This document shows, one piece after another, positions 1,707-34,771 of a stretch of DNA of 64,000 bases. The notes beneath the pieces are model-generated. The model had not been told where the DNA came from and did not search any database. It worked only from the letters and a program-made list of their open reading frames with translations. The stretch is taken from the sequence record NC_061448.1; one strand, 5' to 3'. Made by a program: the position numbers and the translations under genes. How positions within the stretch are numbered: the stretch's first letter is position 1; every line of letters begins with the position of its first letter.

Positions 1707-2502
1707 GCATTACGAAGGCCCATACGGACTTGTTGAGTCTGACAACATGGTTCCCCGCTGGACGTACCCTGTTAAGCATGGACAGATACGCCGAGTAGAA
1801 GCGTGGGAACTTGATAAGATGCCAAACACCACTATGCGTGTGCGTATGGTGAATGACATTCATGCAATCCACAGTACACCTGTAGAGGAACACGATGACG
1901 ACTCACTCGACCTCGACGAAGAAGCCGCAGCGATCTCAAAAACTGAGTCCCGACTTCTTATCAAGCCTCGACTCAATGAAGTCCGTTCCCGTAAAAATAA
2001 AGACCACGTTGGTCCAGAAAACGTCTTCACAGTCCCTGCCGAAGTAATCGACGGCACACTGGACAGTGTTGACGATCACGCGAAAACGTTCCGTGACTAT
2101 CTGCTGCATCAGGTATTCAGCCCGATACTTGGGTTTGATATTGCAGCCGGTGAAGTAGAAGCAATCTCGAAAGACTGTCTCAAAACAGACCTAGAGATTG
2201 ATAGCGAGCTTGTGCCTTACATTGAGCGCGTAGGGCTTGCTAACATCATCGGTGTGATGCTGTCGAAGTCGCAGTCAGTGCCTGAGTCTGTACGCACAGA
2301 CGTGCTGAAAGACTGGCTAATCAAATCGTTCGATGACGTGCGAGCAGAGCACAAAGCGAAGACAGGCAGTAATACGTTACGTGCCCAGCTTCGTCGCTTG
2401 ATGCACGGTAACGACGAGCTGGTTGCCAAGGGTGCTGGCATAGGTACAACACGCGGATTTACTGAATACAGGAAGAAACAGAACGAGAATGGCCAAGCCT
2501 AA
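1699..2502 (+). CDS. hypothetical protein; candidate terminase small subunit by position only
   Basis: 267-aa ORF overlapping the terL start; no diagnostic motif recognised. Confidence 0.55.
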   Translation: MGKHYEGPYGLVESDNMVPRWTYPVKHGQIRRVEAWELDKMPNTTMRVRMVNDIHAIHSTPVEEHDDDSLDLDEEAAAISKTESRLLIKPRLNEVRSRKNKDHVGPENVFTVPAEVIDGTLDSVDDHAKTFRDYLLHQVFSPILGFDIAAGEVEAISKDCLKTDLEIDSELVPYIERVGLANIIGVMLSKSQSVPESVRTDVLKDWLIKSFDDVRAEHKAKTGSNTLRAQLRRLMHGNDELVAKGAGIGTTRGFTEYRKKQNENGQA

Positions 2503-5317
2503 AAAAGGCCCAGCGTTCACGATACGTCCGAAACGAATAGCTGCATTCGATGCGCTGCTTGGTGACGACGTTAAAGTGGACGCCTCATCCGACGTAGATT
2601 TTTTGTCGGAGAATAGTTCGAGTGCGATTAACTTTCTCGAAAAGGGCGAGGTTAACATTGTTGACCTCGTTGAAGGTGCTTTAGAACAACGCACACTTGT
2701 GCCGCGTGATTTGAAGTTTGATGACAGTTCAATGCCCCGCGCCAAGAACTTCCTTGAGTGGTGTACTAGTCCCGACTTCTTAAAAGCCGACCCGTATCTC
2801 GAACAGGCCATGATTGGTCTGCGCTTGTTTGGTGAGATCTGCGTTAAGTGCTCACCGAACTTGCAATGGATGTACACTGAAAACCATGAGCCACAAGAAA
2901 CGACTGCCGCGATAGAGACACACTTACACCTGCTACACAATGGTGTGTGCCCTCATTGCGGCGCTCGTCGTTCTGAGATGATTCGCAGGAAAGAGATGAA
3001 CTTCTACAACGAACTGGCGGTGAACGCCGGACAGCGTTGTGTGATTGCTTCAACTCCTGTGTTGACCTCTCGTGGCGTCATGCCTATCGGACACATGATG
3101 ATTGGTCATGACAGTCCTGGGTTCCACAAGCCGCAGCGTAACTTCAATGCGCATAACGGTCGTGAGATCAAGAACGTCAGTCAAGTCTACGTGTCCGATG
3201 AAGCACCAACCAAAGTCGTCACGCTCGCTAACGGCATGTGGATTGAAGCAACCCATGAGCACCCTGTGCGCACTGAGCAAGGCTTTAAGAAAGTGTCTAA
3301 GCTGCGTGGCGGTGAGCGTATCGAAATCAAACTCGGTACGAACTCATGGGGCAAGATACAGCGTCCAGTCTCTATCTACGATGCTGGTCTGTCTACGCGA
3401 GAAGAAGCGCTGCGCTATATTGCTGAACGCAGTGTGCCTCTCGGCGAAAAGATGCAGTACGTTACCGAAGACCCAGATGCACTTCAAATGGTGTGGTCGA
3501 TTCTAATCAACGCTGGTCACATGCCGCAGATCGTTCACGGTACGCGCATGTGGAGCTTGGTGTATGACTTGACTGAACAACCAGAATGTCGCTCTGTTCA
3601 CGTTGAGGTAATCTCCGTTGATGATGGTACTCCGCAGGTCACGTATGACTTGCAGATGGAAGGACTGCCGCAGTTCGTTGCGTCTGGCCTTGTGCACCAC
3701 AACAGCGGGAAGTCAGTTGTAGTAGCGATGATCTCGACCTATCTTACGCACAGGCTGCTTATGTCGCAGTCGCCTACTGGCATCTTGGGTATCGACAGCA
3801 CAACCGTATTGCACGGTACGTTCGTTGCCCTGACCCAGAAGCAAGCGTCTGATACACTCTGGACTCCGTACTTCAACTACATCATGGGTAGTCCGTGGTT
3901 CCAAGCATATCATGATCTGATTCGCAAACACGAGCGTCGTTATGGCATCGAGGTGATGAAGATTCGCGACACGTTCGTACTATACGGACACAGGAACTTC
4001 GTTATCTATCCTGCCGGGCCTGATGGTCGTATTCTTCGTGGTCGAACCCGTGTACTGGCGGTAATCGACGAAGTGGCGTATTTCGACAACGACGCCCAAT
4101 CCAAGAAGATCAAAGTCAGTGCTGGTGCAGTGTACGGCGCACTCGACCGTTCACTCGCAACTGTTCGTTCTGCCGAGATGCGGCAAGTCGAATCTGGTTA
4201 TGATGAAGCATTCACGGGATATTTCTGTAACATCAGTAGTCCGGTTCACGCCCGTGATAAGATTAACGAATTGCTTCGTATGTCAGTAGGATCTGAGAAG
4301 CTGCTGGGTATTCATGCTCCTACATGGAAGATGAACCCGACAATGCCGCGCACCTCTGAGTTCTTAGTCGAAGCGTTTCGTCGTGACCCGGTAGGTGCAG
4401 CCCGAGATTACGGAGCAGAAGCACCGTTGTCTGCTAACCCATTCATCACGCAGCCTACGTTTATCGCAGATGCTATACGTGAGAAAGGTCGTTCGATGTG
4501 TACGTATACCCATCACATCATTCGACACAAAGACGGTGAACGCCAGCGCTATGGTAGTCTCGTCAAAGCGGCAACGACAACCAAAGCGTCGATACTTGCA
4601 ATTGACGCAGGCTTCTCGAACAACAGCTTCGCACTCGTCACAGGCTCACGCGATGACGCAGGGATTATCAGTGTCGATTGTCTGGTAGAGATCGTACCGA
4701 AGCCCGGCATCCCTCTGAACTACACCCTCATATTTGACGAGCTATTGATTCCGCTATGTCGTGCGCGTAACGTTCGCGTAATGCTTGCTGACCAGTGGCA
4801 GTCACTCAAGTTGTTGCAGGATGCGAAACTGAAAGTGGATTCCATCGAGGAGTCCGACCAGTACAGCTTGAAGTATCAGGATATGTGGACTGTTAAGACG
4901 ATGTTCGAATCGCAGCCTAGTCGTATCAGTCTGCCTCGAATGACTCACGCTAAGACTATCGCTGACACTTTGAAATACGATGGTGATGAATACCCTCAAT
5001 GCTTCGAGAACAAACCAACAGAGCACTTGATCATGCAGTTGCAGACTGTGCAAGATACAGGCCGCAGCGTAATCAAGAACACAGGGGCAACCGATGACTT
5101 GTGGCGAGCAATGGCACTCATGGTCTACGGATTCGAGTGTGGTGAGTACGACGAGTATCTGACGAAAGCGCCAGAGGTAGCTATGAATCGTGACCCGAAT
5201 CGCTTGGGTCGCGTGGCACATAGACTCAACTCTGGCACTGCGGGTAGTTCACGACAGGCGCTGTCTGGTGGTCGAGTTCTTGGTTCTGCTCGTACCCGAA
5301 TGATTGGCCGTAAATAA
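2489..5317 (+). CDS. terL: terminase large subunit precursor containing an intein
   Basis: After intein removal, Walker A reads AGQR-SGKS. Walker B VLAVIDEVAY, RNase H-like nuclease motif ILAIDAGFSNNSFAL and C-terminal DDLWRA are present. Confidence 0.9.
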   Translation: MAKPKKGPAFTIRPKRIAAFDALLGDDVKVDASSDVDFLSENSSSAINFLEKGEVNIVDLVEGALEQRTLVPRDLKFDDSSMPRAKNFLEWCTSPDFLKADPYLEQAMIGLRLFGEICVKCSPNLQWMYTENHEPQETTAAIETHLHLLHNGVCPHCGARRSEMIRRKEMNFYNELAVNAGQRCVIASTPVLTSRGVMPIGHMMIGHDSPGFHKPQRNFNAHNGREIKNVSQVYVSDEAPTKVVTLANGMWIEATHEHPVRTEQGFKKVSKLRGGERIEIKLGTNSWGKIQRPVSIYDAGLSTREEALRYIAERSVPLGEKMQYVTEDPDALQMVWSILINAGHMPQIVHGTRMWSLVYDLTEQPECRSVHVEVISVDDGTPQVTYDLQMEGLPQFVASGLVHHNSGKSVVVAMISTYLTHRLLMSQSPTGILGIDSTTVLHGTFVALTQKQASDTLWTPYFNYIMGSPWFQAYHDLIRKHERRYGIEVMKIRDTFVLYGHRNFVIYPAGPDGRILRGRTRVLAVIDEVAYFDNDAQSKKIKVSAGAVYGALDRSLATVRSAEMRQVESGYDEAFTGYFCNISSPVHARDKINELLRMSVGSEKLLGIHAPTWKMNPTMPRTSEFLVEAFRRDPVGAARDYGAEAPLSANPFITQPTFIADAIREKGRSMCTYTHHIIRHKDGERQRYGSLVKAATTTKASILAIDAGFSNNSFALVTGSRDDAGIISVDCLVEIVPKPGIPLNYTLIFDELLIPLCRARNVRVMLADQWQSLKLLQDAKLKVDSIEESDQYSLKYQDMWTVKTMFESQPSRISLPRMTHAKTIADTLKYDGDEYPQCFENKPTEHLIMQLQTVQDTGRSVIKNTGATDDLWRAMALMVYGFECGEYDEYLTKAPEVAMNRDPNRLGRVAHRLNSGTAGSSRQALSGGRVLGSARTRMIGRK
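3038..3703 (+). mobile_element. 222-aa intein in the terL Walker A motif, no intact homing endonuclease
   Basis: Block A CVIASTPVLTSRG, block B ATHEHP, blocks F/G YDLQMEGLPQFVASGLVHHN, +1 Ser. Confidence 0.9.
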
Positions 5318-12233: not shown

Positions 12234-13004
12234 ATGAGCAACGTTGATAAAACAATGCCTGTCGGCCGCTGGGAGTTCAATGAGCCAGTTGCTTCTGTGT
12301 TCGATAACATGCTGCAAAACTCAATCCCCTCCTACGACCGTATGCGTGATCTGACCTATCGTCTGGGTCGTCAGTTCGTAACTCCCGGTACTGCTATCGT
12401 TGACCTCGGTGCGTCACTCGGCCGCGCTATCGAACCGTTCTGTGCTGAGTTCGGTGAGTATCGTTACCATCACGCAGGTGACCGTCCTATTCCTGACGAA
12501 GAAGTCGGTAACCTGTACTGCTGCTACGAAGTCGCGCCAGCAATGCTTGAGCGTCTGCGTGAAAACGAAGTGCTGAAACAGGCTAAAGCGAAAATCAGTA
12601 GCGAGTCGCTGGTGGAAGTAGACACGTTCCGCTTCGACGAACAGGTTGAGTGTTCACTCATTCTGTCTGTGCTTACTCTCCAGTTCACGCCGATTGAACA
12701 TCGTCAGCACATTCTGGAGAAAGTGTACGATAGCCTTGAGAAAGGCGGCGCGTTCATCCTCGTTGAGAAAGTTCTCGGTGATGACAACTTCCTCGACCGT
12801 CTGCTGGTAGATACGTACTACGGCATGAAAGGCGATAACGGTTACTCGCAAGAAAGCATTGCGACGAAACGTAAAGCGCTTGAGGGCGTACTCGTACCTG
12901 TCAAAGCCGCGTGGAACGAAGAACTGCTGCGCAAAGCTGGCTTCGACCGCGTTGAATGTTTCTACCGCGATCTTAACTTCGCTGGATGGATCGCAATTAA
13001 GTAA
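12234..13004 (+). CDS. cmoA: carboxy-S-adenosyl-L-methionine synthase (CmoA homolog)
   Basis: Aligns by eye end to end with E. coli CmoA: WEFNEPVASVFDNMLQNSIPSY, DLGASLG, LTLQF, GGAFILVEK, NGYSQESIATKRKALEGVL, LRKAGF, LNF. The Arg199-equivalent is retained (12870-12872). Confidence 0.88.
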   Translation: MSNVDKTMPVGRWEFNEPVASVFDNMLQNSIPSYDRMRDLTYRLGRQFVTPGTAIVDLGASLGRAIEPFCAEFGEYRYHHAGDRPIPDEEVGNLYCCYEVAPAMLERLRENEVLKQAKAKISSESLVEVDTFRFDEQVECSLILSVLTLQFTPIEHRQHILEKVYDSLEKGGAFILVEKVLGDDNFLDRLLVDTYYGMKGDNGYSQESIATKRKALEGVLVPVKAAWNEELLRKAGFDRVECFYRDLNFAGWIAIK

Positions 13005-13011
13005 GGGAAGT

Positions 13012-14277
13012 ATGATGAAAGTAAACGGGCGTATCTTAGCAATCGTGCCTCACAAGACTCTTCTGGACAGAACCAAGTCTGGTGTTGGTGCGTACATTGA
13101 TGGACTCGAAGACTATGGCTTCTGCGACTTCATCACTGACGGTGAAAACAGCTCTGTTACCAAGAGCCAGTGGTTTAACTACGGTGATACCACTCTGAGC
13201 GACGGGTACAAAGTTGGTCACATTCAAAGTGCTCTGCTCGAAGCGCTTGATCGCACTCCGTATCGTGCAATCATCTGTAGCACCTACGAAGCTGTCGAAG
13301 CTGCTGTCGGCCTTGGGCTGCCTAAGATTATGCCTGTTTACTACCGTTCGCATAACAGCTTCCTGTTGACGCAAGACCTGAACGGACTTGGTGCTGAGAA
13401 GATGCACCGTGCGCTGCTGCAAGCTCCTGTTACAGGTCTGCGTATCTTAGCGAACTGCGACTCGACTGCGCGTGTGCTGTCTGAGATTTATAAAACTGAG
13501 GCTGCTGTCGCGTACAACGCATTCAGTGTATCAGACTACAATCCACCAGCGAAGCGTAAACCCTCGCTGCTGATTATCTGTCGCTACGAAAAGGTTAAGC
13601 GTCCTACGTTTGCTGCGCGTATCGCTGCTGCGTCTGGTCTGCCTGTTCGTGTGATGACCGGCTCTGACCGTCAAGTCAAGAGCTGGGAGAAAGAGCTTGC
13701 TGATGCAGGCGTGAAAGATTACCAAGTCGTTAGCGGTCTGTTCGGTGACGAGAAGATGGCGTTCATCGGACAATGTACCGTAGCGCTTTCGTGTGCCGAA
13801 GTAGAGTCATTCGCTAACGGTGTACGTGAGACTATCCCGTACTGCCCTACGTTCGTTGTGCAAACTTCTAAGTACGATTGGGCGCGAGACTATACGCGCT
13901 TCTGCTCTGAGAACAAGCACATCCACATTCGCACTGTTGATCGTGTGACTGCGAAAGAGGTGGAAGAACTCGGCAACGAGATTGCTTACTGGGCTTGCAC
14001 TAAGTACCTGACAAAAGCTGAACGTACTACGCTGCTGACCGAATGGTGCAAGCGCGTAGACAAAGGCTGGGCTGACTTCATGAAGAATGCAGTCGTGCCC
14101 GATGACGGCAAGCCGATGAAGACCGACCTGTCGAAAGAACTCGAAGAAAAAGGCGTAGTAGACTGGTCGAAGACGCAGACGTTAATGCGTACTGTAAAAG
14201 CTATACACAAGTGTCATGCTCGTATGGGCCTGACGTTCGATGGCACCAAAATCAAAACGAAAGGGAAGAAGAAATGA
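13012..14277 (+). CDS. GT-B fold glycosyltransferase (GT4-like or phage DNA alpha-glucosyltransferase-like)
   Basis: SGVGAY near the N-terminus, ICRYEKVKRP, ESFANGVRE (ExFG...E-like). Start corrected to ATG 13012. Confidence 0.7.
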   Translation: MMKVNGRILAIVPHKTLLDRTKSGVGAYIDGLEDYGFCDFITDGENSSVTKSQWFNYGDTTLSDGYKVGHIQSALLEALDRTPYRAIICSTYEAVEAAVGLGLPKIMPVYYRSHNSFLLTQDLNGLGAEKMHRALLQAPVTGLRILANCDSTARVLSEIYKTEAAVAYNAFSVSDYNPPAKRKPSLLIICRYEKVKRPTFAARIAAASGLPVRVMTGSDRQVKSWEKELADAGVKDYQVVSGLFGDEKMAFIGQCTVALSCAEVESFANGVRETIPYCPTFVVQTSKYDWARDYTRFCSENKHIHIRTVDRVTAKEVEELGNEIAYWACTKYLTKAERTTLLTEWCKRVDKGWADFMKNAVVPDDGKPMKTDLSKELEEKGVVDWSKTQTLMRTVKAIHKCHARMGLTFDGTKIKTKGKKK

Positions 14278-15308
14278 ACGTGATTGGTGATATCTATAAT
14301 ATTCCGCAACCGTACGCGATGTTCTGTGGTAACGCCACGACGAAAGCAATGGCGAAGATCACTGCCGGTATGGTTGAGTGGGCGTCAGAGAAAGTCTGCT
14401 GTGTAGTTGACGACGCTAACAACCTGTTCCCTGAAATGCCTCACGTTGAAATTCGTGACCTCGATAAGACCGATGCAGAAACTCTGGTTATCGGGTTTGC
14501 CCCGTTCGGCGGTCAGATTAACGAAGACATTGATCGCGCTATTCGCTCTGCGCTGTCTCGTGGCCTGAACGTTGCTGCTGCGCTGCACGTTAAGCTGGCA
14601 GACAATGCTGAATACTGCGCTCTGGCTAATCAGTATGGAGTGAAGCTGTATGACTTCCGCCACCACCCTGAGCAATATCCTCTGGGCACTGGTCTGCCTC
14701 GTGCCGGTGTTCGTGTTCTTACTGTTGGTACTGACTGTTCGTGCGGTAAGAAATACACTGCACTCGCACTGACCAAGAAGCTGACCGAGCTGAAACAGAA
14801 AGCTGTGTTCTGCGCTACAGGCCAAACGGGTTTCCTGATTAGCGGTCGTGGCATCAACAACGACACTGTGGTTGCTGACTTCCTTGCTGGTGCTGCTGAG
14901 TGGCTGTCACCTGCTGACGAAGAAGCTATCTATCTGATTGAGGGTCAAGGTGCGCTGCGTCATCCAGCTTACACTGGTGGCAGCATGAGTCTGATTGCTG
15001 GCTCTCAGCCCGACGCTCTCGTTGTCTGCCACACTGTTGGCCGCAACTTCATGCTGAACACCGAGCGTGAGATCAACCTCGTTGACGAGATCGCTGCTAA
15101 CATCGACGCTGCTGCGATGCACGACTGGTACCCTAAAGTTGTTGGTATCAGTATCAATTTCTGCGAAGTGAAGATGACGAAGAAAGAGCGTGAAGTATAT
15201 CTGCGTAGTCTTTCTTTGAGCAGTGGCTACGTGGCTTTCGACCCACAAGCCGGCGGTGAAGAGTTCGACCGCGTTGCTCACTACATCACGACGCTGAAAC
15301 GCCGATGA
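14274..15308 (+). CDS. DUF1611 family protein (DgcN-like, P-loop)
   Basis: VGTDCSCGKKYT, ATGQTGFLI, ADFLAGAAEWL, IEGQGALRHPAY, GSQPDALVVCH. Confidence 0.85.
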   Translation: MNVIGDIYNIPQPYAMFCGNATTKAMAKITAGMVEWASEKVCCVVDDANNLFPEMPHVEIRDLDKTDAETLVIGFAPFGGQINEDIDRAIRSALSRGLNVAAALHVKLADNAEYCALANQYGVKLYDFRHHPEQYPLGTGLPRAGVRVLTVGTDCSCGKKYTALALTKKLTELKQKAVFCATGQTGFLISGRGINNDTVVADFLAGAAEWLSPADEEAIYLIEGQGALRHPAYTGGSMSLIAGSQPDALVVCHTVGRNFMLNTEREINLVDEIAANIDAAAMHDWYPKVVGISINFCEVKMTKKEREVYLRSLSLSSGYVAFDPQAGGEEFDRVAHYITTLKRR

Positions 15309-16249
15309 AAGTCTTAATCGACCGTGCCGCGTTAGCGAGTAATGCGGCCTATTTAAACTCACTCGCTCCGTCCATGATTCCGGTTGTGAAAGGTAATTTC
15401 TACGGACATGGTTTAGATTGCGTGACAGCATTCGCCTTAGGGTTTGAGGTGCTCGCAGTTCATAGCGACCGCGAAGCACTTGCGCTGCGTCAGTTAGAAC
15501 TCGACAACACGCTGTTAGTTCTCGGCGGCACCGACAGTCTCATGTGGAATACAGTGCCTGTGCTGAACGCAGAGCAAGTCGGTACGTATGGAGGCCGATA
15601 CGCTGTGTTTGCTGATTGGGGTTGTCGTCGTATCAACGTCAAACCTGAACAGCTTACGCATCCACCAGCGTTGATTCTCGTTCACTCGGATGACTATCGT
15701 GTGCCTGTGTCTGAGTACGACGCTAACGAGATCGCCCAGCGCTACAACGTGCCTCTGTCTATGCTGTCTGTTGGTTCGAGCATGAACGTGCTTAATCAAT
15801 ACGCACCGAAGTTGAAGCCGCGTGTTGGCATGGCGCTTACCGGATATAGTAGCGATGAAACTGTGAACGGTAATTTGTGCGTAGCGAAGACAGTGCTTGC
15901 TCGTATCTGCGATAAGCTGGATGCGGGCCGAGTATTCGGTTACGGTGCATTAGTACCGAACTGCGCGGACAAGTTCTTGTACTCGATTGATGTGGGTTAC
16001 TACGACAACCTGTATCAGTCTGACAACAACACACCTGTGCATTGCCCTGACGTGCCACACGCGCAAGTCACGTTGCTCACAGGCGTTGCCCACGCAATCA
16101 GCATGAACCATGCCTTCGTATTGTCAGATACTGAGCTACCGTTTGACTCCGATATTGAACTACTCGGACCTAACGTTCGCGCAGACTATCTGGCTAAACT
16201 TCACGGAACAACAACTGCGAATATTTTAAGGCTGGGTAATCATGGCTAA
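15305..16249 (+). CDS. alr: PLP-dependent alanine racemase-like enzyme
   Basis: VVKGNFYGHG (PLP Lys29), PRVGMALTG, GYG, VGYYD, ISMN (vs VCMD). Confidence 0.82.
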   Translation: MKVLIDRAALASNAAYLNSLAPSMIPVVKGNFYGHGLDCVTAFALGFEVLAVHSDREALALRQLELDNTLLVLGGTDSLMWNTVPVLNAEQVGTYGGRYAVFADWGCRRINVKPEQLTHPPALILVHSDDYRVPVSEYDANEIAQRYNVPLSMLSVGSSMNVLNQYAPKLKPRVGMALTGYSSDETVNGNLCVAKTVLARICDKLDAGRVFGYGALVPNCADKFLYSIDVGYYDNLYQSDNNTPVHCPDVPHAQVTLLTGVAHAISMNHAFVLSDTELPFDSDIELLGPNVRADYLAKLHGTTTANILRLGNHG

Positions 16250-17111
16250 ACACGTTTTGCGCAAGCTGTTTGAACAGCACGTTAAAGCAGAGGTCAAAGA
16301 CAACAAGGTGGCAGTGCTGCTGTCCAGTGGTCTTGACGGACTCGTTAGCGGGCTTGCTGCCCATGACTTAGGAAAGAAGGTACACGCCTTTACTTTCCAG
16401 ATGGGCGACAACGAAAGTTTCGACAGCAAACACGCGCGTAAAGTCGCAGAGAAGATGGGCTGGGAGTTCACGCTTGTGAAAGTACCGACGTCTGACAGCG
16501 CTATCGTGCAGGGTTGGAAAGCGCTTCACGCGAAGTACCGCTGTGTTAAGAAGCGTGACTATGAGTGTGCATATCCTATGGTGTATTGCTACAAGGCAAT
16601 CAAGGATGCAGGTTACAAGTACGTACTGAGCGGCCTTGTCGCTGATGCTTACTTCTGTTTTGCGCGTAACACTCACATCGCTAAAATCAGCGGCCCGCAT
16701 AGCGTACTCGAAAAGTTCGACGAGTATCGCAAAGCATACTGGGCACCGTGGTTCAAGAACGGTAAGAAGTCTCTCGGCGTTGACGGTTATAACCCAAGCG
16801 GTATGCTGCAACACGAAATGCTGTGCGACTCTTTCGGCCTGACCCACGTTAACCCGTGGCTGATGAAGAAAGTCCATGACTACTTCATTGGTCGTTCGTG
16901 GCAAGAACTAAATCAACCCAAGCAGAAAATGCCAATAACAGAAGCATGGGCTGATCACATCGCGGTTGTAGGCCATCGCCCGCATCGCGGTTATCAAACA
17001 GAAGCTGGAGTACCTGCGTACTTCGAACGCTTACTGGATAATCCTGAGATCAACTTCAACGGTCGCAAGCGTGTTATGGATCTTGCGCGTGATTGGTCAA
17101 CGAGGACTTAA
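16242..17111 (+). CDS. asparagine-synthetase-like ATP-dependent amide ligase lacking the glutaminase domain (CmoY-like candidate)
   Basis: PP-loop VAVLLSSGLDG, FTF, D...ARKVAE, YVLSGLVADAYF; only 289 aa with no Ntn domain. Confidence 0.75.
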   Translation: MAKHVLRKLFEQHVKAEVKDNKVAVLLSSGLDGLVSGLAAHDLGKKVHAFTFQMGDNESFDSKHARKVAEKMGWEFTLVKVPTSDSAIVQGWKALHAKYRCVKKRDYECAYPMVYCYKAIKDAGYKYVLSGLVADAYFCFARNTHIAKISGPHSVLEKFDEYRKAYWAPWFKNGKKSLGVDGYNPSGMLQHEMLCDSFGLTHVNPWLMKKVHDYFIGRSWQELNQPKQKMPITEAWADHIAVVGHRPHRGYQTEAGVPAYFERLLDNPEINFNGRKRVMDLARDWSTRT

Positions 17112-20806: not shown

Positions 20807-21649
20807 ATGACCGTAATCAGTCCTATTCGTTATCAGGGCAATAAGCGAAGCCTTATCCCTCTTATTCTCGAACACACACCAAGCGTACAAGACTGTCCGC
20901 GTATGGTTGATGTGTTTGGCGGTAGCGCTACTGTCTGTGCGAACATGCCGCAGAAGTTTCGCGTCTACAACGAACTGAGTCCTCAGGTGTTTGAGATCGT
21001 CAAGATGCTTGTCGAGCAAGACCCGAAGAAAACTCTAGGTCAAGTCAAGCGTCTGGTGAAGCACTGGTGTCTGACAAACAGCAACGAAGAAAACTACGAT
21101 GCGTTCCGCGAAGTCGTCCAGAAGAAGCGAACGCCTATCTTGCATTACGTTGCGCACAGACACGCGCACTCGAACATGCTGCGATTCAACCAGCAGGGTA
21201 TCTATAACGTAGGCTTTGGCGATCGTGGTCTGATTGGTAAGTTCGATGAACTCGCCGATGAACTCACAACGTTTCACAGTCACATGCAGGGCGTTCACCT
21301 GACGAACATGAAGTACGGTAAGCTACTCGGTCGTCTAGGCAAACAACTGGACTGCAACACGTTCTGTTACTTTGACCCGCCTTATCTTGCGAGCGGTGCG
21401 ATGCAGTATGGCAAGTGGACTGAAAGCAATGAGCGCAACCTGCTTGCTACTCTCGAACATCTCAATCGTCTTGGCGTACCGTGGATGTTGAGCAACGTGA
21501 CAGAGCACCGACACTTCTCAAACGATTTGTTGAAGCGCTGGTTAAAGAAACACGCGACAACCGTGCTCTATCCAAACAAAAGCTATGCGATGAACAACGG
21601 TCAGAGTGGCTCGCATGGTACTGTTGAAATTCTGGCAATGAACTATTGA
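20807..21649 (+). CDS. dam: DNA adenine methyltransferase, T4 Dam-like (D12 class)
   Basis: YQGNK, VDVFGGS, HSNMLRFN...FG, YFDPPY. Confidence 0.88.
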   Translation: MTVISPIRYQGNKRSLIPLILEHTPSVQDCPRMVDVFGGSATVCANMPQKFRVYNELSPQVFEIVKMLVEQDPKKTLGQVKRLVKHWCLTNSNEENYDAFREVVQKKRTPILHYVAHRHAHSNMLRFNQQGIYNVGFGDRGLIGKFDELADELTTFHSHMQGVHLTNMKYGKLLGRLGKQLDCNTFCYFDPPYLASGAMQYGKWTESNERNLLATLEHLNRLGVPWMLSNVTEHRHFSNDLLKRWLKKHATTVLYPNKSYAMNNGQSGSHGTVEILAMNY

Positions 21650-24152: not shown

Positions 24153-24658
24153 ACGAATTACCGATGAACCTCGATCAAGCTGAACACATCATGGCCAGTG
24201 TGTTTACGCTTGCTGGTGCGTCGAAGTCAAAGCGTCGTGCTACTGCTGCGATGCTCATTCATTTCCATCACGGCTTTCCGACTGTAATCAGTAGCGGCGT
24301 GAACGGTACACAGCCGGGCGCGAGCAACGTCATGGAGAACGAAGACCTGACGCTTTCGCTCGACACTGTTATTCATGCTGAGGTGAATTGTCTCAATCGC
24401 ATGGAAGAACACAGCATGTGGGCAGAAGAAGAGGACATCTTGTTCTGCACTGATTCGCCGTGTCCGAACTGTCTCGCTGACCTCGAAGCTGAGGGCGTTA
24501 AGACAGTTGTGTATGCGCGTGAGTATCGCCTGACTGATCATCTCGACGCATCGAAGATCAAGATGTTCTGTCTCGATATGGACAGCGTTGTCCGACGTAT
24601 GCAGCACGGTATCGACCGCATCAATGACGTAATCGCAACAACACCAGCGTCTAACTAA
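24137..24658 (+). CDS. dCMP deaminase (zinc-dependent cytidine deaminase family)
   Basis: SGVNG, HAEVN, SPCPNC. Confidence 0.85.
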   Translation: MRCNLNELPMNLDQAEHIMASVFTLAGASKSKRRATAAMLIHFHHGFPTVISSGVNGTQPGASNVMENEDLTLSLDTVIHAEVNCLNRMEEHSMWAEEEDILFCTDSPCPNCLADLEAEGVKTVVYAREYRLTDHLDASKIKMFCLDMDSVVRRMQHGIDRINDVIATTPASN

Positions 24659-28526: not shown

Positions 28527-28876
28527 TGCCTCCTGTAATTCGTTTCAACGAGCAAACCCGCGAACTGCTGAGAAAGACATTCGGCATTGATTCACCTTTC
28601 ATTGTCGTGCGTCGTGAGCGCATCATCGAAGACGATAAGCCTTTCGGTGAGCGTGTCTATTTGAACAACGGCATTTACACCGTGACCGTACCTAACGTAC
28701 AGGGTCTCGATCTCGGCGATAAGCTGTATCTCGCAGAAGATATGGAAGTGTATGAGTGGCACCCGCACTTCGGTCTTCATCCTACCATCTATCCTTCTGT
28801 AAGCAACAACCAGAAGACTGCGCTCTCATTCGGCCTTCATCCTATCATCTATCATAAAGACAGTCGGAACTCTTAA
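28526..28876 (+). CDS. hypothetical protein with a short internal repeat
   Basis: FGLHPTIY / FGLHPIIY. Confidence 0.7.
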   Translation: MPPVIRFNEQTRELLRKTFGIDSPFIVVRRERIIEDDKPFGERVYLNNGIYTVTVPNVQGLDLGDKLYLAEDMEVYEWHPHFGLHPTIYPSVSNNQKTALSFGLHPIIYHKDSRNS

Positions 28877-29979
28877 TGAACAAGCAACCTCTTGATCTGC
28901 GCGATCCAAATCAGTACGAAGTTTATTCTCTGCATTGCGTAGACGAACAGTACATCAACCTCGGTAACGCTATTCTGGCTTGTGGTACTGACGAGCACGA
29001 CAACGGCCGCACCAACGATTCGTGGCGTACTCTGATTGGCATCGGCTTCCAGTTATCTAACACGTTGATCGCTTTCCCTGCGTTGCTGTCTGCGCGTAAG
29101 AACTGGTACGCTGCTGTTGATGAAACCTGCTGGTTCATGCGCGGCGACACGAACATCAGTTCGCTCAACTCCAAAATCTGGGACAGCTGGGCAGACGAAG
29201 ACGGTGAGTGTGGTCCTATCTATGGTCTGATGTGGCGCATGTGGCCTGACATTAAAACGTTCCCGACTATTGAGTCGATGAAAGAGCGTCAGATCAGCGA
29301 TGCAGAAATCGAGCGCATCGCCAAAGAAATCAATCGCATGAAAGCGGCAGGCTACACTGAAACAGAAATGGCCGATGGTCGTGTATGCTACGAAGGTACG
29401 ATTGACCAGTTCGCTAATGCGCTGCGTGACGTTATGGATCGTTCGCGCTCCCGTCGTATTCGCGTTCAGGCATTCAACCCAGGCTATCAGCATATGCAGG
29501 GTCTGCCTCCGTGTCATACGGAGTTTGAGTTCAATGTGACTCAACCAACTCCGTATGAGATTGCTCAGATGGAGGCGCGTGGCATGGCATCTTCCGACGC
29601 ATCGTTGCATATCGTTGTGACCATGCGTTCCAATGATGTGCTGCTGGGGCGTCCCTTCAACATCATGGGCTACAGCGCAATGCACCAACTGATTGCCAAG
29701 TGGGCTGGGTTGAACGTCGGTAGCTTCACGCTCAACACGACGAACACGCACCTGTACACGCATCACTTCGAAGCGTTCGAACAGCAGAAGCAACAGTGGG
29801 CAGCGCTCAGTGATCTGATGAAGAAAACTGGTCAGCCTATTCAGTACCCGCTGCTCGAAATCAGCGACGACATTCTCGGCCTGACGCCGGAAGAGTTGTT
29901 GGACAACGCAAACGCCGAGTGGTTCCAACTTCTCGACTACTCCCCTGCACCAATGGTTAAAGGACGTGTGACCAAATGA
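28876..29979 (+). CDS. thyA: thymidylate synthase (ThyA/Td type)
   Basis: GPIYG, SRRI, LPPCH, MRSND, GRPFN, NTHLYTHH. Confidence 0.92.
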   Translation: MNKQPLDLRDPNQYEVYSLHCVDEQYINLGNAILACGTDEHDNGRTNDSWRTLIGIGFQLSNTLIAFPALLSARKNWYAAVDETCWFMRGDTNISSLNSKIWDSWADEDGECGPIYGLMWRMWPDIKTFPTIESMKERQISDAEIERIAKEINRMKAAGYTETEMADGRVCYEGTIDQFANALRDVMDRSRSRRIRVQAFNPGYQHMQGLPPCHTEFEFNVTQPTPYEIAQMEARGMASSDASLHIVVTMRSNDVLLGRPFNIMGYSAMHQLIAKWAGLNVGSFTLNTTNTHLYTHHFEAFEQQKQQWAALSDLMKKTGQPIQYPLLEISDDILGLTPEELLDNANAEWFQLLDYSPAPMVKGRVTK

Positions 29980-31935: not shown

Positions 31936-32640
31936 ATGGCAAAAACTGCTATCAAAGCAAAGGACGGAAAAAAGAAAGACGGGTTGAAGTTTGATCTCAA
32001 AAAACTCAACTCAGTCGCTCAACTGAAAGGCGCTGACTATAACCCGCGTTTCATTACAGACAGTCGCTTGAAAGCACTCGAAGGTTCTTTGGGTAGCTTC
32101 GGCGACTTGTCTGGTATCGTGTTTAACAACAACGTCAAATCCGGTGTGTTGATCTCAGGCCACCAGCGTCTGAAATCTATCGACGGTTGGAAGACTCGTA
32201 TCGAGATCCAAAAGACCGTTGACAAACACGGCACTATCGCTCTGGGCTACATCCACGCGACGCATCCGAAGAAGTCTGATAAAGTGATCAGCATTCCTCT
32301 GCGTATCGTGAACTGGACCGATAAGAAAGCGGAGTACGCAGCGAACATCGCAGCGAACGCCCACGGCGGTGAGTTCGATAACAAGAAGCTCGCCAAGCTG
32401 GTGGAAAAACTCGATCTCAACACAATCAAGCCGCAGTTACTCGGCCTTGACCCGTTAGAGATTCGCGGTCTGCAACAAAAGCTGAAAGTACAGGCTGTTG
32501 TGCAAGACGACAAACGCGCTGGCAAGACTACCGGCCAGATGAACGGTAGTACCGGTAAGTTCAATGAGTACAACGCTGACGATGTTGGCGATACTCTGAA
32601 CTGCACCTGCCCGCGCTGTGGATTTAAGTTCGAGGGATAA
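31936..32640 (+). CDS. ParB/Sulfiredoxin-like N-terminal domain protein with a C-terminal zinc ribbon
   Basis: YNPRFI, SLGSFG, ISGHQRL, NAHGGEFD, CTCPRCGFKF. Confidence 0.8.
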   Translation: MAKTAIKAKDGKKKDGLKFDLKKLNSVAQLKGADYNPRFITDSRLKALEGSLGSFGDLSGIVFNNNVKSGVLISGHQRLKSIDGWKTRIEIQKTVDKHGTIALGYIHATHPKKSDKVISIPLRIVNWTDKKAEYAANIAANAHGGEFDNKKLAKLVEKLDLNTIKPQLLGLDPLEIRGLQQKLKVQAVVQDDKRAGKTTGQMNGSTGKFNEYNADDVGDTLNCTCPRCGFKFEG

Positions 32641-32641
32641 T

Positions 32642-34771
32642 ATGATCATCAAGCCGCCTACGATGAAGGAAATCAACAAGCTGGATAAACCCTGGCGTGG
32701 TATGAGTTTCTTCGCAGGTTGCGGTGGTTCTTCTACCGGTCACAAGATGGCCGGTATCAATATCTTGCTGAGTAACGAGTTTGTTGACCCAGCAAGAGAG
32801 TCATACGAAGCGAACCACCCGACAACGAAAGTGCTGCCTCATGACATTCGCCGCCTCGACCCCGGTAAGCTGTTACGTTACTGCGGTCTGGATAAAGGTG
32901 AACTTGATTTACTTGACGGTAGTCCTCCTTGCTTTACCGAAGACACTATCATTCATACAGCAGACGGCATGAAGTTCATCTCGGACATGAACGTCGGCGA
33001 CAGAGCGATGACCAGTGTCGGGCAGTATTACCCTGTATACGACACAATGGTCAGACCGTATGTCGGTACGATGCACAAAGTCGAAACGCTGATCAGCAGC
33101 AACAACGCAACGCCTGAGCATCCGTTCTTTGTTAGACGTGCGCTGGCGGAAGGCGGTTACTCTGATCCGTTCTGGTGTGATGCGAAAGACGTGCAAGAAG
33201 GCGACTTGCTTGGCACTCCTCGCGTTACGCCTGATCAACAGCCGGGCGTGTATTACGATCAGATTGCGCAACTGCCGAAGATGATTCAGCAGTGGGTGTG
33301 CATCCCTGAGTTCTGGTGGATGGTAGGACACTGGTGTGATCGCGGTTCAATCGAAACAGTTAGCGGCGTTGAAGTCGTTAGCTTCGAATCGCACACCAGC
33401 CTTGAAAACGCGATGATTGAGCAGGCGTTTGACGCGCTTAAACTCAGTAGCCTGAATCGCATTGACACGATGACTGCGCAACGCAAAACGTTCCGTACTG
33501 TTATCGACGCAGAGCTGGTGCAGTTCTTACGCCGCTTCGTCAGTCAAGGCAACAACACGTTCTCCCGTCGTCTGCCAGCAATGATGTTCCACATGAACAC
33601 CGAGTTGAAACAACAATTCATTCTCGGTTGTGCGGGGCATGACTATGTGACTGCGATGGGCACTGGCCTTGCTATCACATCAAACAGCAAACGCTTCCTG
33701 CTTGAGCTTAACTACCTGTGCTGTTCTGCATTCAATCGTCCTCTGTTTGACGGAATGATTTGGGGAGATGTTTACTTCGGTAGTCCACTGACGCCGCGCG
33801 AGCGTAACAGTTCGCGTGAGCACATCGGCTACCTGTTCTTGCAGGACGAGCACAACTTCTTCCACGAGTTCAGCGATAGCGATTCACATCTCTGGACCGA
33901 AGTGATTGAGAACCTTGCGTATCAGGCAACGTGCGACGTGTACAACTTCTCTGTTGAAACAGACGAAACGTATGTGGCTAACGGTGTTGTCGTTCACAAC
34001 TGCAAAGGCTTCTCGACTGCTGGCGTGAAAGAAGAAGGCTGGGGCAAAGAAGTTAAGTACAGCGACAATAAATATCAGCAGGTAGATGACCTGTTCGATC
34101 AGTATTGTCGTATGCTGCAAGGTATGCAGCCTAAAGTGTTCACTGCGGAAAACGTTAGTGGTCTTGTGAAGGGAATCTCGAAAGGGTACTTCCTTGAGAT
34201 CATGAAGACGTTCGACAAGCTCGGCTACTACGTGCGAGCACCGATGTTGAATGCGTGTTGGCTCGGTGTACCGCAGTCGCGTGAGCGTATCATCTTCATG
34301 GGTGTGCGCAAAGACGTAGCACATGCGCTTGGTTATAAAAATGCGCGTGAAGCTGTGCCTGATGTTATCCCGTGCGATACGCAAGCCTTCCTCGGCGATG
34401 CGTTGCCTCACATCTTACGATACAAGACGACGCAGAAAGACCTGATCAAGTATCTGCCCTCAGTTAACGGACCGATGCCAACGATTACAGCGTCTGATGC
34501 AATCGCGTATGAAACAGCGCGTTTCTCGTCTGCTGGGTTTATCGAAGACAACAAAGGTCATCGCCGTAAACTGACTATCGACGAACTGCTGGTAGTTTCG
34601 GGAATGCCGTCTGACTATAAGCTGGTTGGCAAATTCGAAGAACAGTGGGAACGTCTTGGTCGTGTCTGTGTGCCAGCAATGACACACGCAGCATCGAAGG
34701 CTTTCATCGAACATATTCTTTTGCCTTACGCGAAGAAGAAAAAGAAAAAGCCAGGCGATATATTTAAGTAA
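32642..34771 (+). CDS. C5-cytosine DNA methyltransferase-fold enzyme with an intein; predicted carboxymethyltransferase (CmoX-like)
   Basis: Motif I FAGCGG, IV SPP-C-KGFS after splicing, VI ENV, VIII QSRERI, IX RKLTIDE...GMPSDY, X LGRVCVP (Arg at the canonical GN Asn). Confidence 0.88.
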   Translation: MIIKPPTMKEINKLDKPWRGMSFFAGCGGSSTGHKMAGINILLSNEFVDPARESYEANHPTTKVLPHDIRRLDPGKLLRYCGLDKGELDLLDGSPPCFTEDTIIHTADGMKFISDMNVGDRAMTSVGQYYPVYDTMVRPYVGTMHKVETLISSNNATPEHPFFVRRALAEGGYSDPFWCDAKDVQEGDLLGTPRVTPDQQPGVYYDQIAQLPKMIQQWVCIPEFWWMVGHWCDRGSIETVSGVEVVSFESHTSLENAMIEQAFDALKLSSLNRIDTMTAQRKTFRTVIDAELVQFLRRFVSQGNNTFSRRLPAMMFHMNTELKQQFILGCAGHDYVTAMGTGLAITSNSKRFLLELNYLCCSAFNRPLFDGMIWGDVYFGSPLTPRERNSSREHIGYLFLQDEHNFFHEFSDSDSHLWTEVIENLAYQATCDVYNFSVETDETYVANGVVVHNCKGFSTAGVKEEGWGKEVKYSDNKYQQVDDLFDQYCRMLQGMQPKVFTAENVSGLVKGISKGYFLEIMKTFDKLGYYVRAPMLNACWLGVPQSRERIIFMGVRKDVAHALGYKNAREAVPDVIPCDTQAFLGDALPHILRYKTTQKDLIKYLPSVNGPMPTITASDAIAYETARFSSAGFIEDNKGHRRKLTIDELLVVSGMPSDYKLVGKFEEQWERLGRVCVPAMTHAASKAFIEHILLPYAKKKKKKPGDIFK
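32930..34000 (+). mobile_element. 357-aa intein inserted just before the catalytic Cys; degenerate LAGLIDADG-like region
   Basis: Block A CFTEDTIIHTADG, block B ATPEHPF, relics MVGHWCDRGSI and FILGCAGHD, blocks F/G VYNFSVETDETYVANGVVVHN, +1 Cys. Confidence 0.92.

Follow-up and report, generated by a model that had tools for sequence, protein, structure and literature searches.

A predicted CmoX-family DNA cytosine carboxymethyltransferase of the Erwinia jumbo phage pEa_SNUABM_1, divided at its catalytic cysteine by a putative intein

Introduction

What does a DNA cytosine-C5 methyltransferase (C5-MTase) transfer when the asparagine of its motif X is replaced by an arginine? The question is raised by gp051, a gene at positions 32642..34771 (+ strand) of the stretch of DNA analysed here (the window), which comprises bases 1-64000 of Erwinia phage pEa_SNUABM_1 (MZ443776.1 / NC_061448.1), so that record coordinates and window coordinates coincide; over 5 kb surrounding the arginine codon the identity to this record is 100%. 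pEa_SNUABM_1 is an Alexandravirus jumbo phage of Erwinia amylovora with a genome of 266,939 bp, and RefSeq labels gp051 a hypothetical protein. An earlier note on this DNA had proposed that the arginine marks a natural DNA carboxymethyltransferase and links it to a distant cmoA gene. From the data presented below we consider gp051 very likely to encode, in precursor form, a DNA cytosine C5-carboxymethyltransferase belonging to the CmoX family.

The family has been characterised in a cyanophage, and all statements in this paragraph come from that work (Yang et al., Nat Commun, December 2025, PMC12783734). Synechococcus phage S-B43 encodes SpCmoX (PDB 8YF3), a naturally occurring DNA cytosine C5-carboxymethyltransferase whose product is 5-carboxymethylcytosine (5cxmC). 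Its cofactor, carboxy-S-adenosylmethionine (Cx-SAM), is supplied by the phage's CmoA, and the wild-type enzyme takes Cx-SAM only. The crystal structure shows Arg-350 where M.HhaI has Asn-304, in contact with the carboxymethyl group of Cx-SAM, and the R350N variant accepted neither S-adenosylmethionine (SAM) nor Cx-SAM. SpCmoA was experimentally active; in E. coli, the host CmoA suffices for CmoX. CmoY, a ligase resembling asparagine synthetase, couples glycine to the carboxylate. The authors collected 5,615 candidate CmoX sequences, recognised by SPPC and R350 and often found beside CmoA, ligases and ParBc proteins. They also likened SpCmoX to M.MpeI N374K, the engineered CpG carboxymethyltransferase (reference 21), a parallel that the earlier note had drawn as well.

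Results

The gp051 precursor has 709 amino acids (aa; ~80 kDa) and consists of an N-extein, an intein and a C-extein. It matched the Pfam family DNA_methylase (PF00145) with E 1.3e-37, in two pieces around a Hint/intein region. We preferred the ATG at 32642 as start codon because it is preceded by a GAGG Shine-Dalgarno sequence, because RefSeq uses the same start and because the N-termini of homologs agree with it; a GTG at 32618, which would give the longest open reading frame, was set aside. Motif X reads WERLGRVCVP (34646..34675, +), compared with a consensus of WERLGR[AS]VPP in the family and with Q.GN[AS]VP in canonical C5-MTases. The earlier note had read the same string and had located the arginine correctly at 34661-34663 (codon CGT, +), but had let the motif begin at 34645, one base before the Trp codon. 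The arginine is R674 before splicing and R317 after it (R682 and R325 when counted from GTG 32618).

The position of this residue was examined with a profile of 21 CmoX family members aligned to PDB chains to place motif X. The column of the Arg is occupied by Asn in M.HaeIII ('MIGNAVP') and in M.HhaI ('QFGNSVV', N304), and the claim that the Arg replaces the canonical motif X Asn was thereby borne out. The Asn of GN[AS]V, which faces the methyl group of SAM in C5-MTases that form 5-methylcytosine (5mC), is not what gp051 carries at this place. Its Arg aligned instead with SpCmoX R350, and since that residue contacts the carboxymethyl group of Cx-SAM, the pairing with the cofactor carboxylate that the earlier note had suggested is supported by homology.

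The remainder of the protein pointed to the same relative. 8YF3 was the best PDB match of gp051, with an E-value of 6e-53 in a phmmer search with the precursor and of 4e-90 with the family profile. In blastp the spliced protein and SpCmoX shared 34.8% identity over 353 aa (E 9e-67). An AlphaFold model of spliced gp051 (predicted local distance difference test score, pLDDT, 89) likewise found 8YF3 as its best Foldseek match in the PDB (E 1.5e-30, template modelling score 0.73-0.77), with M.HhaI and M.HaeIII ranking behind it. Nine out of nine SpCmoX residues singled out in PMC12783734, F25, E47, F48, D69, S95, P96, P97, C98 and R350, were conserved in the pairwise alignment; the SPPC motif of mature gp051 depends on the predicted splicing described below.

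The Arg was invariant in alignment A1. It was found in 115/120 of the closest protein-database homologs, with Asn in five and Met in one, and in 79 of 80 loci from IMG/VR. Judged from these sequences, the Arg did not arise as a random exchange. The Asn-type members (P0057, P0065, P0074, P0101, P0116 and L053) have GN[AS]VPP, often together with PPCQ, and fall within the Arg clade with 38-49% identity, while Flavobacterium phages (L086 = FpV9) have Met at this position (LIGMSVPP) and no phage cmoA. On the present alignments the motif X residue has switched more than once. Four homologs of 510-613 aa (P0074, P0078, P0086, P0098) contain a motif X string of the form ER.G[RN]... twice each; fusion or partial duplication of methyltransferase genes could explain this, as could errors in gene calling.

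If the Arg serves to hold Cx-SAM, it should keep company with a Cx-SAM synthase, and the earlier note had named the co-occurrence of Arg and cmoA as a check. The outcome was strongly positive. Eight of the 80 IMG/VR loci belong to the clade of the window itself, where cmoA falls outside the 10-kb flank. Among the other Arg-type loci, 70/71 had a CmoA-like gene, at a median distance of 54 nt from cmoX, whereas none of the three informative Asn-type loci (L053, L090, L094) had one; a fourth, L093, was left out as it ends 139 nt after the gene. Fisher's exact test gave p = 6e-5, a value that overstates the evidence since the loci are related and it was computed without correction for phylogeny. 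The count depended on the query: the CmoA of the window alone, at E 1e-5, found 36/80 loci, which is an undercount, and SpCmoA as an added query brought in 34 more, divergent ones. The CmoA-like genes at Arg-type loci comprise ~31 clear homologs (E below 1e-39) and ~39 members of a divergent subfamily (L018-L078, e.g. L046:2971-3621), which lie immediately downstream of the Arg-type CmoX and are ~20% identical to SpCmoA. CmoA was the best NCBIfam match in five sampled members of this subfamily and E. coli CmoA the best PDB match in one, far below the cut-offs. Moraxella phage Mcat8 (L087) is a counter-example to strict co-occurrence: its 40.7-kb genome encodes an Arg-type CmoX homolog (VERMGRMVAP) and gave no phage cmoA match. 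By analogy with the E. coli experiment, Mcat8 presumably relies on the CmoA of its host.

The cultured relatives of pEa_SNUABM_1 behaved in the same manner and provide a second line of evidence, independent of the first. CmoA, the C-extein of CmoX, the intein and the ligase occurred in identical numbers of records, namely 48 from Erwinia phages, 2 from Dickeya phages and 1 from a Yersinia phage each. The Dickeya jumbo phages JA11, JA13 and JA29 have a portal protein 70% identical to that of the window and a collinear genome, and in these JA11-like phages CmoA, CmoX, the intein and the ligase were all absent. When positions 9000-36000 of JA11 (L098) were compared with 8890-39916 of the window, the flanks gp013-gp015 and gp024-gp025 adjoined with no cmoA cassette (gp016-gp023) between them, and no ParB-cmoX pair followed the thyA region. 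In Table 5 of Day et al. 2018 (PMC6143709), a methyltransferase, an Asn synthase, a cytosine methyltransferase and the 'repressor' upstream of the last are given as shared by AD1 and Y3 and absent from JA11. From gene content, the JA11-like phages are a natural double-deletion or never-acquired lineage.

These distributions bear on the question whether gp051 could be an ordinary C5 DNA methyltransferase that forms 5mC from SAM, its Arg a quirk of the lineage and cmoA employed for tRNA modification or SAM depletion. Every canonical C5-MTase motif is present in gp051, GenBank names orthologs DNA-cytosine methyltransferase, and cmoA, at 19.6 kb, is not adjacent. An ordinary enzyme would nevertheless be expected to have the invariant motif X Asn, which is missing here, and the nearest characterised relative, SpCmoX, refuses SAM. 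Nor would it account for the contrast between Arg-type and Asn-type loci, for the joint gain or loss of cmoA, cmoX and ligase (AD1 and Y3 have them, JA11 has none), or for the contiguity of the same genes in PaBG, L009 and L010. We regard 5mC formation as an unlikely function of this gene. The tie between residue and cmoA that the earlier note had postulated holds as a co-occurrence, down to the JA11-like phages that lack both. Because SpCmoX R350N accepts neither cofactor, the R-to-N change that the note had suggested for gp051 is not expected to restore methylation. By analogy, the motif X Arg is necessary but not the sole determinant.

Carboxymethylation by gp051 would presuppose protein splicing. 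The N-extein (32642..32929, +; 96 aa) contains motif I (FAGCGGSSTG, 32711-32740, +) and an NEF motif and D68 as predicted cofactor contacts, and ends in GSPP (32918-32929). It is followed by the predicted intein (32930..34000, +; 357 aa, ~41 kDa; residues 97-453 of the precursor) and by the C-extein (34001..34771, +; 256 aa and the stop codon). The latter opens with motif IV, CKGFSTAG (34001-34024, +), whose first Cys is both the catalytic Cys and the +1 residue of the intein, and goes on with the ENV motif VI (34145-34165, +), the QSRER motif VIII (34271-34291, +), motif IX (34565-34618, +) and motif X. The junctions read ...LDGSPP / CFTEDTIIH...(357 aa)...ANGVVVHN / CKGFSTAG..., with slashes at the splice sites, and all residues of a class 1 intein are present: Cys1 (CFTEDT), the block B motif TPEH, the terminal His-Asn (VVVHN) and the +1 Cys. 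The NCBIfam model intein_Cterm scored 23.2 bits, above its cut-off of 15.6. Removal of residues 97-453 yields GSPPCKGFS, the very string of uninterrupted homologs (up to 70% identity), and from this identity it follows that the intein lies within motif IV and uses the catalytic cysteine of the methyltransferase fold as +1 nucleophile.

An insertion that separates the catalytic Cys from SPP might also cripple the gene, with no or rare splicing, and gp051 would then not carboxymethylate the phage DNA. In favour of this view, the Pfam intein models stayed sub-threshold, a PDB sequence search with the intein returned nothing significant (best E 0.44), and its central part of ~200 aa was matched by nothing in Pfam, NCBIfam, the PHROG functions or the PDB and belonged to no recognisable homing-endonuclease family. 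The conservation pattern, on the other hand, is not that of a decaying gene. The C1, HN and C+1 junction residues were invariant in 8/8 aligned relatives with inteins up to 64% divergent, and the block B TxxH was likewise intact and invariant. The intein-bearing gene was kept open in all 51 related records, which are the cultured-phage records counted above, and in each of them the intein directly preceded the C-extein. It diverges much faster than the exteins, Yoloswag having an intein with 36% identity and a C-extein with 76%. In comparison with five IMG/VR contigs of the same phage clade, the ratio of nonsynonymous to synonymous substitution rates (dN/dS) was 0.02-0.15 for the exteins, i.e. 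strong purifying selection; for the intein it was 0.11-0.21 in the four comparisons with estimable dS, the fifth and most divergent one being saturated. Inteins of other sizes, 257 and ~170 aa (P0006, P0027), occupy the same SPP/C site in metagenomic homologs. The cmoX precursor is, on this evidence from comparative sequence data, evidently a maintained and working gene, and a crippled gp051 appears to us slightly less probable still than a 5mC-forming one.

Distant relatives of the intein (20-23% identity) were seen at two other places, one being NrdD of phages like Lactococcus phage 949 and the other a methylase that Pseudomonas phage Lana encodes.

The two partner genes described for SpCmoX were found 16-20 kb from gp051. 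cmoA (gp016; 12234..13004, +) encodes a carboxy-SAM synthase homolog that matched E. coli CmoA (4GEK, E 3.5e-31) and SpCmoA (30.7% identity, E 1e-28) and ends 19,638 nt upstream of cmoX. gp020 (16242..17111, +) encodes a CmoY-type, AMP-forming amide ligase (PF00733, E 6.5e-15), identified also by a tblastn match on S-B43; it has the Asn-synthase ATP-PPase domain and lacks the glutaminase domain. It is 34% identical to SpCmoY (E 2.5e-52). The ligases beside cmoA in pEa_SNUABM_2 and PaBG are only ~23-24% identical to gp020, against 33-34% for gp020 and SpCmoY. As gp020 is nearer to the glycine ligase, its amine substrate is probably an alpha-amino acid. Directly upstream of cmoX lies a ParB-like gene (gp050; 31936..32640, +; phrog_620, E 2.4e-31), whose stop codon is 1 nt before the cmoX ATG. 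gp050 gave nothing in the Pfam search and was detected through PHROGs. It fits the ParBc-CmoX association reported in PMC12783734, and the adjacency of ParB and CmoX recurs in PaBG, L009, L010 and TurkishDelight.

The partner genes also speak to the substrate. The target-recognition region of gp051 and the residues after its Arg differ from SpCmoX, and at about half of the metagenomic loci the CmoA-like partner of the enzyme is very divergent; the group transferred might then come from another SAM analogue, or the acceptor might be RNA or free nucleotides instead of duplex DNA. In the window, however, gp016 is a clear CmoA homolog with CmoA as its best NCBIfam match, and a CmoY homolog, which needs a carboxylate handle, is present. 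The fold, the architecture of motif IX and target-recognition domain (TRD) and the ParB-like DNA-binding partner are moreover typical of DNA C5-MTases. Of the alternatives considered in this work, a different group or substrate is in our view the least probable, and carboxymethylation of cytosine in DNA remains the function that we predict for gp051.

Between cmoA and the ligase gene, three further enzymes are encoded. gp017 (13015..14277, +) is a probable GT-B (GT4-like) glycosyltransferase: the protein itself had no family match, PF00534 was matched by 3/8 of its homologs, and its AlphaFold 2 model (pLDDT 80) gave as best Foldseek matches the glycosyltransferases SenB, GlgM, MshA and BshA, with E about 1e-9 to 1e-10. 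gp018 (14274..15308, +) is a homolog of DUF1611 / DgcN-like P-loop N-acyltransferases (PF07755, E 7e-49; PF17396; NCBIfam NF041892 DgcN, E 4.9e-87, below cut-off). gp017 and gp018 are candidate tailoring enzymes of the cassette. gp019 (15305..16249, +) resembles alanine/serine racemases, pyridoxal-phosphate enzymes of fold type III (PF01168, E 6e-11; also NCBIfam), and matched alanine racemases in the PDB with E 2.5e-5.

This block (13015-17111) was compared with the corresponding regions of AD1 (L082), Y3 (L083), pEa_SNUABM_2 (L084), pEa_SNUABM_13 (L095), Yoloswag (L096) and fHe-Yen9-02 (L097). In pEa_SNUABM_1 the order is cmoA, glycosyltransferase, DgcN-like, racemase-like and CmoY genes. 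pEa_SNUABM_13 has cmoA, glycosyltransferase, DgcN-like and CmoY genes, AD1 has cmoA, DgcN-like and CmoY genes, pEa_SNUABM_2 has cmoA and a different ligase, and Y3 and Yoloswag have cmoA, a ligase, a small gene and an 'oxygenase'. Among the six variants compared, gp019 occurred only in the cassette of the window and was absent from AD1, pEa_SNUABM_13, pEa_SNUABM_2 and Y3. The cassette beside cmoA is thus swapped among jumbo phages that otherwise resemble each other closely (80-95% identity in CmoA), in at least five gene combinations. This suggests that several different hypermodifications derived from 5cxmC may exist inside one phage clade. A sugar transferase within a cytosine-carboxymethyl cassette is previously undescribed.

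Other genes of nucleotide and DNA metabolism lie between the two modules. A deoxycytidine monophosphate deaminase (24164-24658) and a Dam-like N6-adenine methyltransferase (20807-21649) both occur in JA11, as does a thymidylate synthase homolog, gp046 (28876-29979, 367 aa), with an insertion of ~100 aa. We asked whether gp046 might hydroxymethylate pyrimidines and so compete for C5, and set this aside, as its score was above the NCBIfam thymidylate-synthase cut-off; it was kept as ThyA.

Discussion

The assignment of gp051 to the CmoX family joins several lines of evidence: a C5-MTase fold, the SPPC motif, the motif X Arg, the retained contacts to Cx-SAM, and the company of a phage CmoA and a CmoY-type ligase are all shared with SpCmoX. 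By homology to that enzyme, the wild type of which takes Cx-SAM only, the earlier note's view of a natural DNA carboxymethyltransferase is upheld as a prediction. There are also differences. In the window the 357-aa intein interrupts cmoX at its catalytic residue, cmoA and cmoY are adjacent in S-B43 and remote here, and the window has a ParB-like gene upstream, VCVP after the Arg and three extra enzymes near the ligase. The TRDs do not align, so that gp051 may recognise a target other than the GC of SpCmoX.

Several observations weigh against our assignment. gp051 is just 35% identical to the characterised SpCmoX, its target-recognition region is unaligned, and the Arg is followed by VCVP where the family has [AS]VPP. 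The Arg alone does not set cofactor choice, SpCmoX R350N being inactive with both cofactors. gp016 has the CmoA model TIGR00740 as its best NCBIfam match (E 4e-43), but the score of 147.8 bits is under the equivalog cut-off of 193.3. Splicing is deduced from the sequence alone; the Pfam model Intein_splicing (E 3.9e-7) reached 30.4 bits, under its cut-off of 35.8, and Hint_2 (E 4.8e-5) was likewise under its cut-off. In the literature searched, no biochemical or mass-spectrometric result was found on gp051, its phage or any Alexandravirus.

The comparison with other C5 enzymes helps to place the protein. M.HhaI and M.HaeIII (PF00145) share with gp051 the fold, motifs I, IV, VI, VIII and IX and the covalent attack of a Cys on C6. 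They have the motif X Asn (GNSV/GNAV), SAM as cofactor and 5mC as product, whereas gp051 has Arg. In M.MpeI N374K, as predicted for gp051, a basic residue at the position of the motif X Asn allows the use of carboxy-SAM. That residue is, however, an engineered Lys in a CpG enzyme from Mycoplasma, which is distant from gp051 (4DKJ, E 7e-4); the latter has a natural Arg and belongs to a dedicated phage clade. Closest in gene content are the Pseudomonas jumbo phage PaBG and the loci L009 and L010, with orthologous ParB-like, Arg-type CmoX (45-52% identity), CmoA and Asn-synthase-like genes and, in L010, a DUF1611 gene between cmoX and the ligase. In these three the module is contiguous and cmoX free of an intein, unlike the clade of the window with its two loci and its intein.

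We propose the following sequence of events. Phage CmoA (gp016) would convert SAM and prephenate to carboxy-SAM. The 709-aa precursor would splice out its 357-aa class-1 intein and join ...GSPP to CKGFS..., by which the catalytic SPPC loop would be formed; the 80-kDa precursor would give a 352-aa enzyme of ~39 kDa and an intein of ~41 kDa. The Cys that serves as +1 residue in splicing would be the same that later attacks C6 of cytosine. The mature enzyme would bind carboxy-SAM with the motif X Arg in a salt bridge to its carboxylate, flip out the target cytosine and transfer the carboxymethyl group to C5 by the covalent Cys-C6 route, yielding 5-carboxymethylcytosine. gp020 would then adenylate the carboxylate and ligate an amine, most likely an alpha-amino acid, and gp017, gp018 and gp019 may tailor the product further. 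DNA modified in this way would resist host restriction. For splicing, cofactor use, target sequence and final chemical structure, this scheme is inferred from homology, residue conservation, co-occurrence and purifying selection.

The polymorphism of the cassette invites a wider and more tentative proposal, which we put forward as possible though doubtful. The Erwinia, Dickeya and Yersinia jumbo phages might use 5-carboxymethylcytosine as a handle for several cassette-swapped and so far undescribed hypermodifications. The adduct of pEa_SNUABM_1 might exceed the published glycine amide in size, a glycosylated or acylated (D-)amino-acid amide being one example, and the whole pathway might be gated by splicing at the catalytic cysteine of CmoX.

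The idea of a natural carboxymethyltransferase with an Arg in motif X is correct, but it was already published for a cyanophage in 2025; given this prior demonstration, our finding confirms that work rather than discovers the activity. Three features were not found in the searched text and supplements of PMC12783734: the intein in the catalytic motif, the distribution of the pathway over two loci and the polymorphism of the cassette beside cmoA. Nor is there any mention of Erwinia, Dickeya, inteins, DUF1611 or racemases in that paper, and the literature searched contained no study of how Alexandravirus, AD1 or Y3 modify their DNA. The cmoX system is now placed in culturable phages of enterobacteria-like hosts. 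With ~50 sequenced siblings, at least five cassettes and the JA11-like phages as natural knockouts, this phage group provides an experimental panel for finding bases derived from 5cxmC and what they protect against; the chemistry of the cassettes is predicted. The intein itself, in splitting the catalytic SPPC, offers a clean example of an enzyme's active-site cysteine serving as +1 nucleophile.

The splitting of the catalytic motif by the intein is also the reason for the labels in RefSeq, where NC_061448.1 gives cmoX as hypothetical and names cmoA 'tRNA methyltransferase'; the record of Y3 already names the ortholog of the latter carboxy-SAM synthase. The public annotations of cmoA and cmoX are outdated rather than contradictory and should be corrected.

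A last observation concerns the large terminase subunit of the window (2489-5317), which is unusually long (942 aa) and whose residues 226-405 weakly matched Intein_splicing (E 1e-4, under the cut-off). Terminase inteins are reported for this group of phages in the PaBG paper, and the terminase gene probably contains a second intein of the window.

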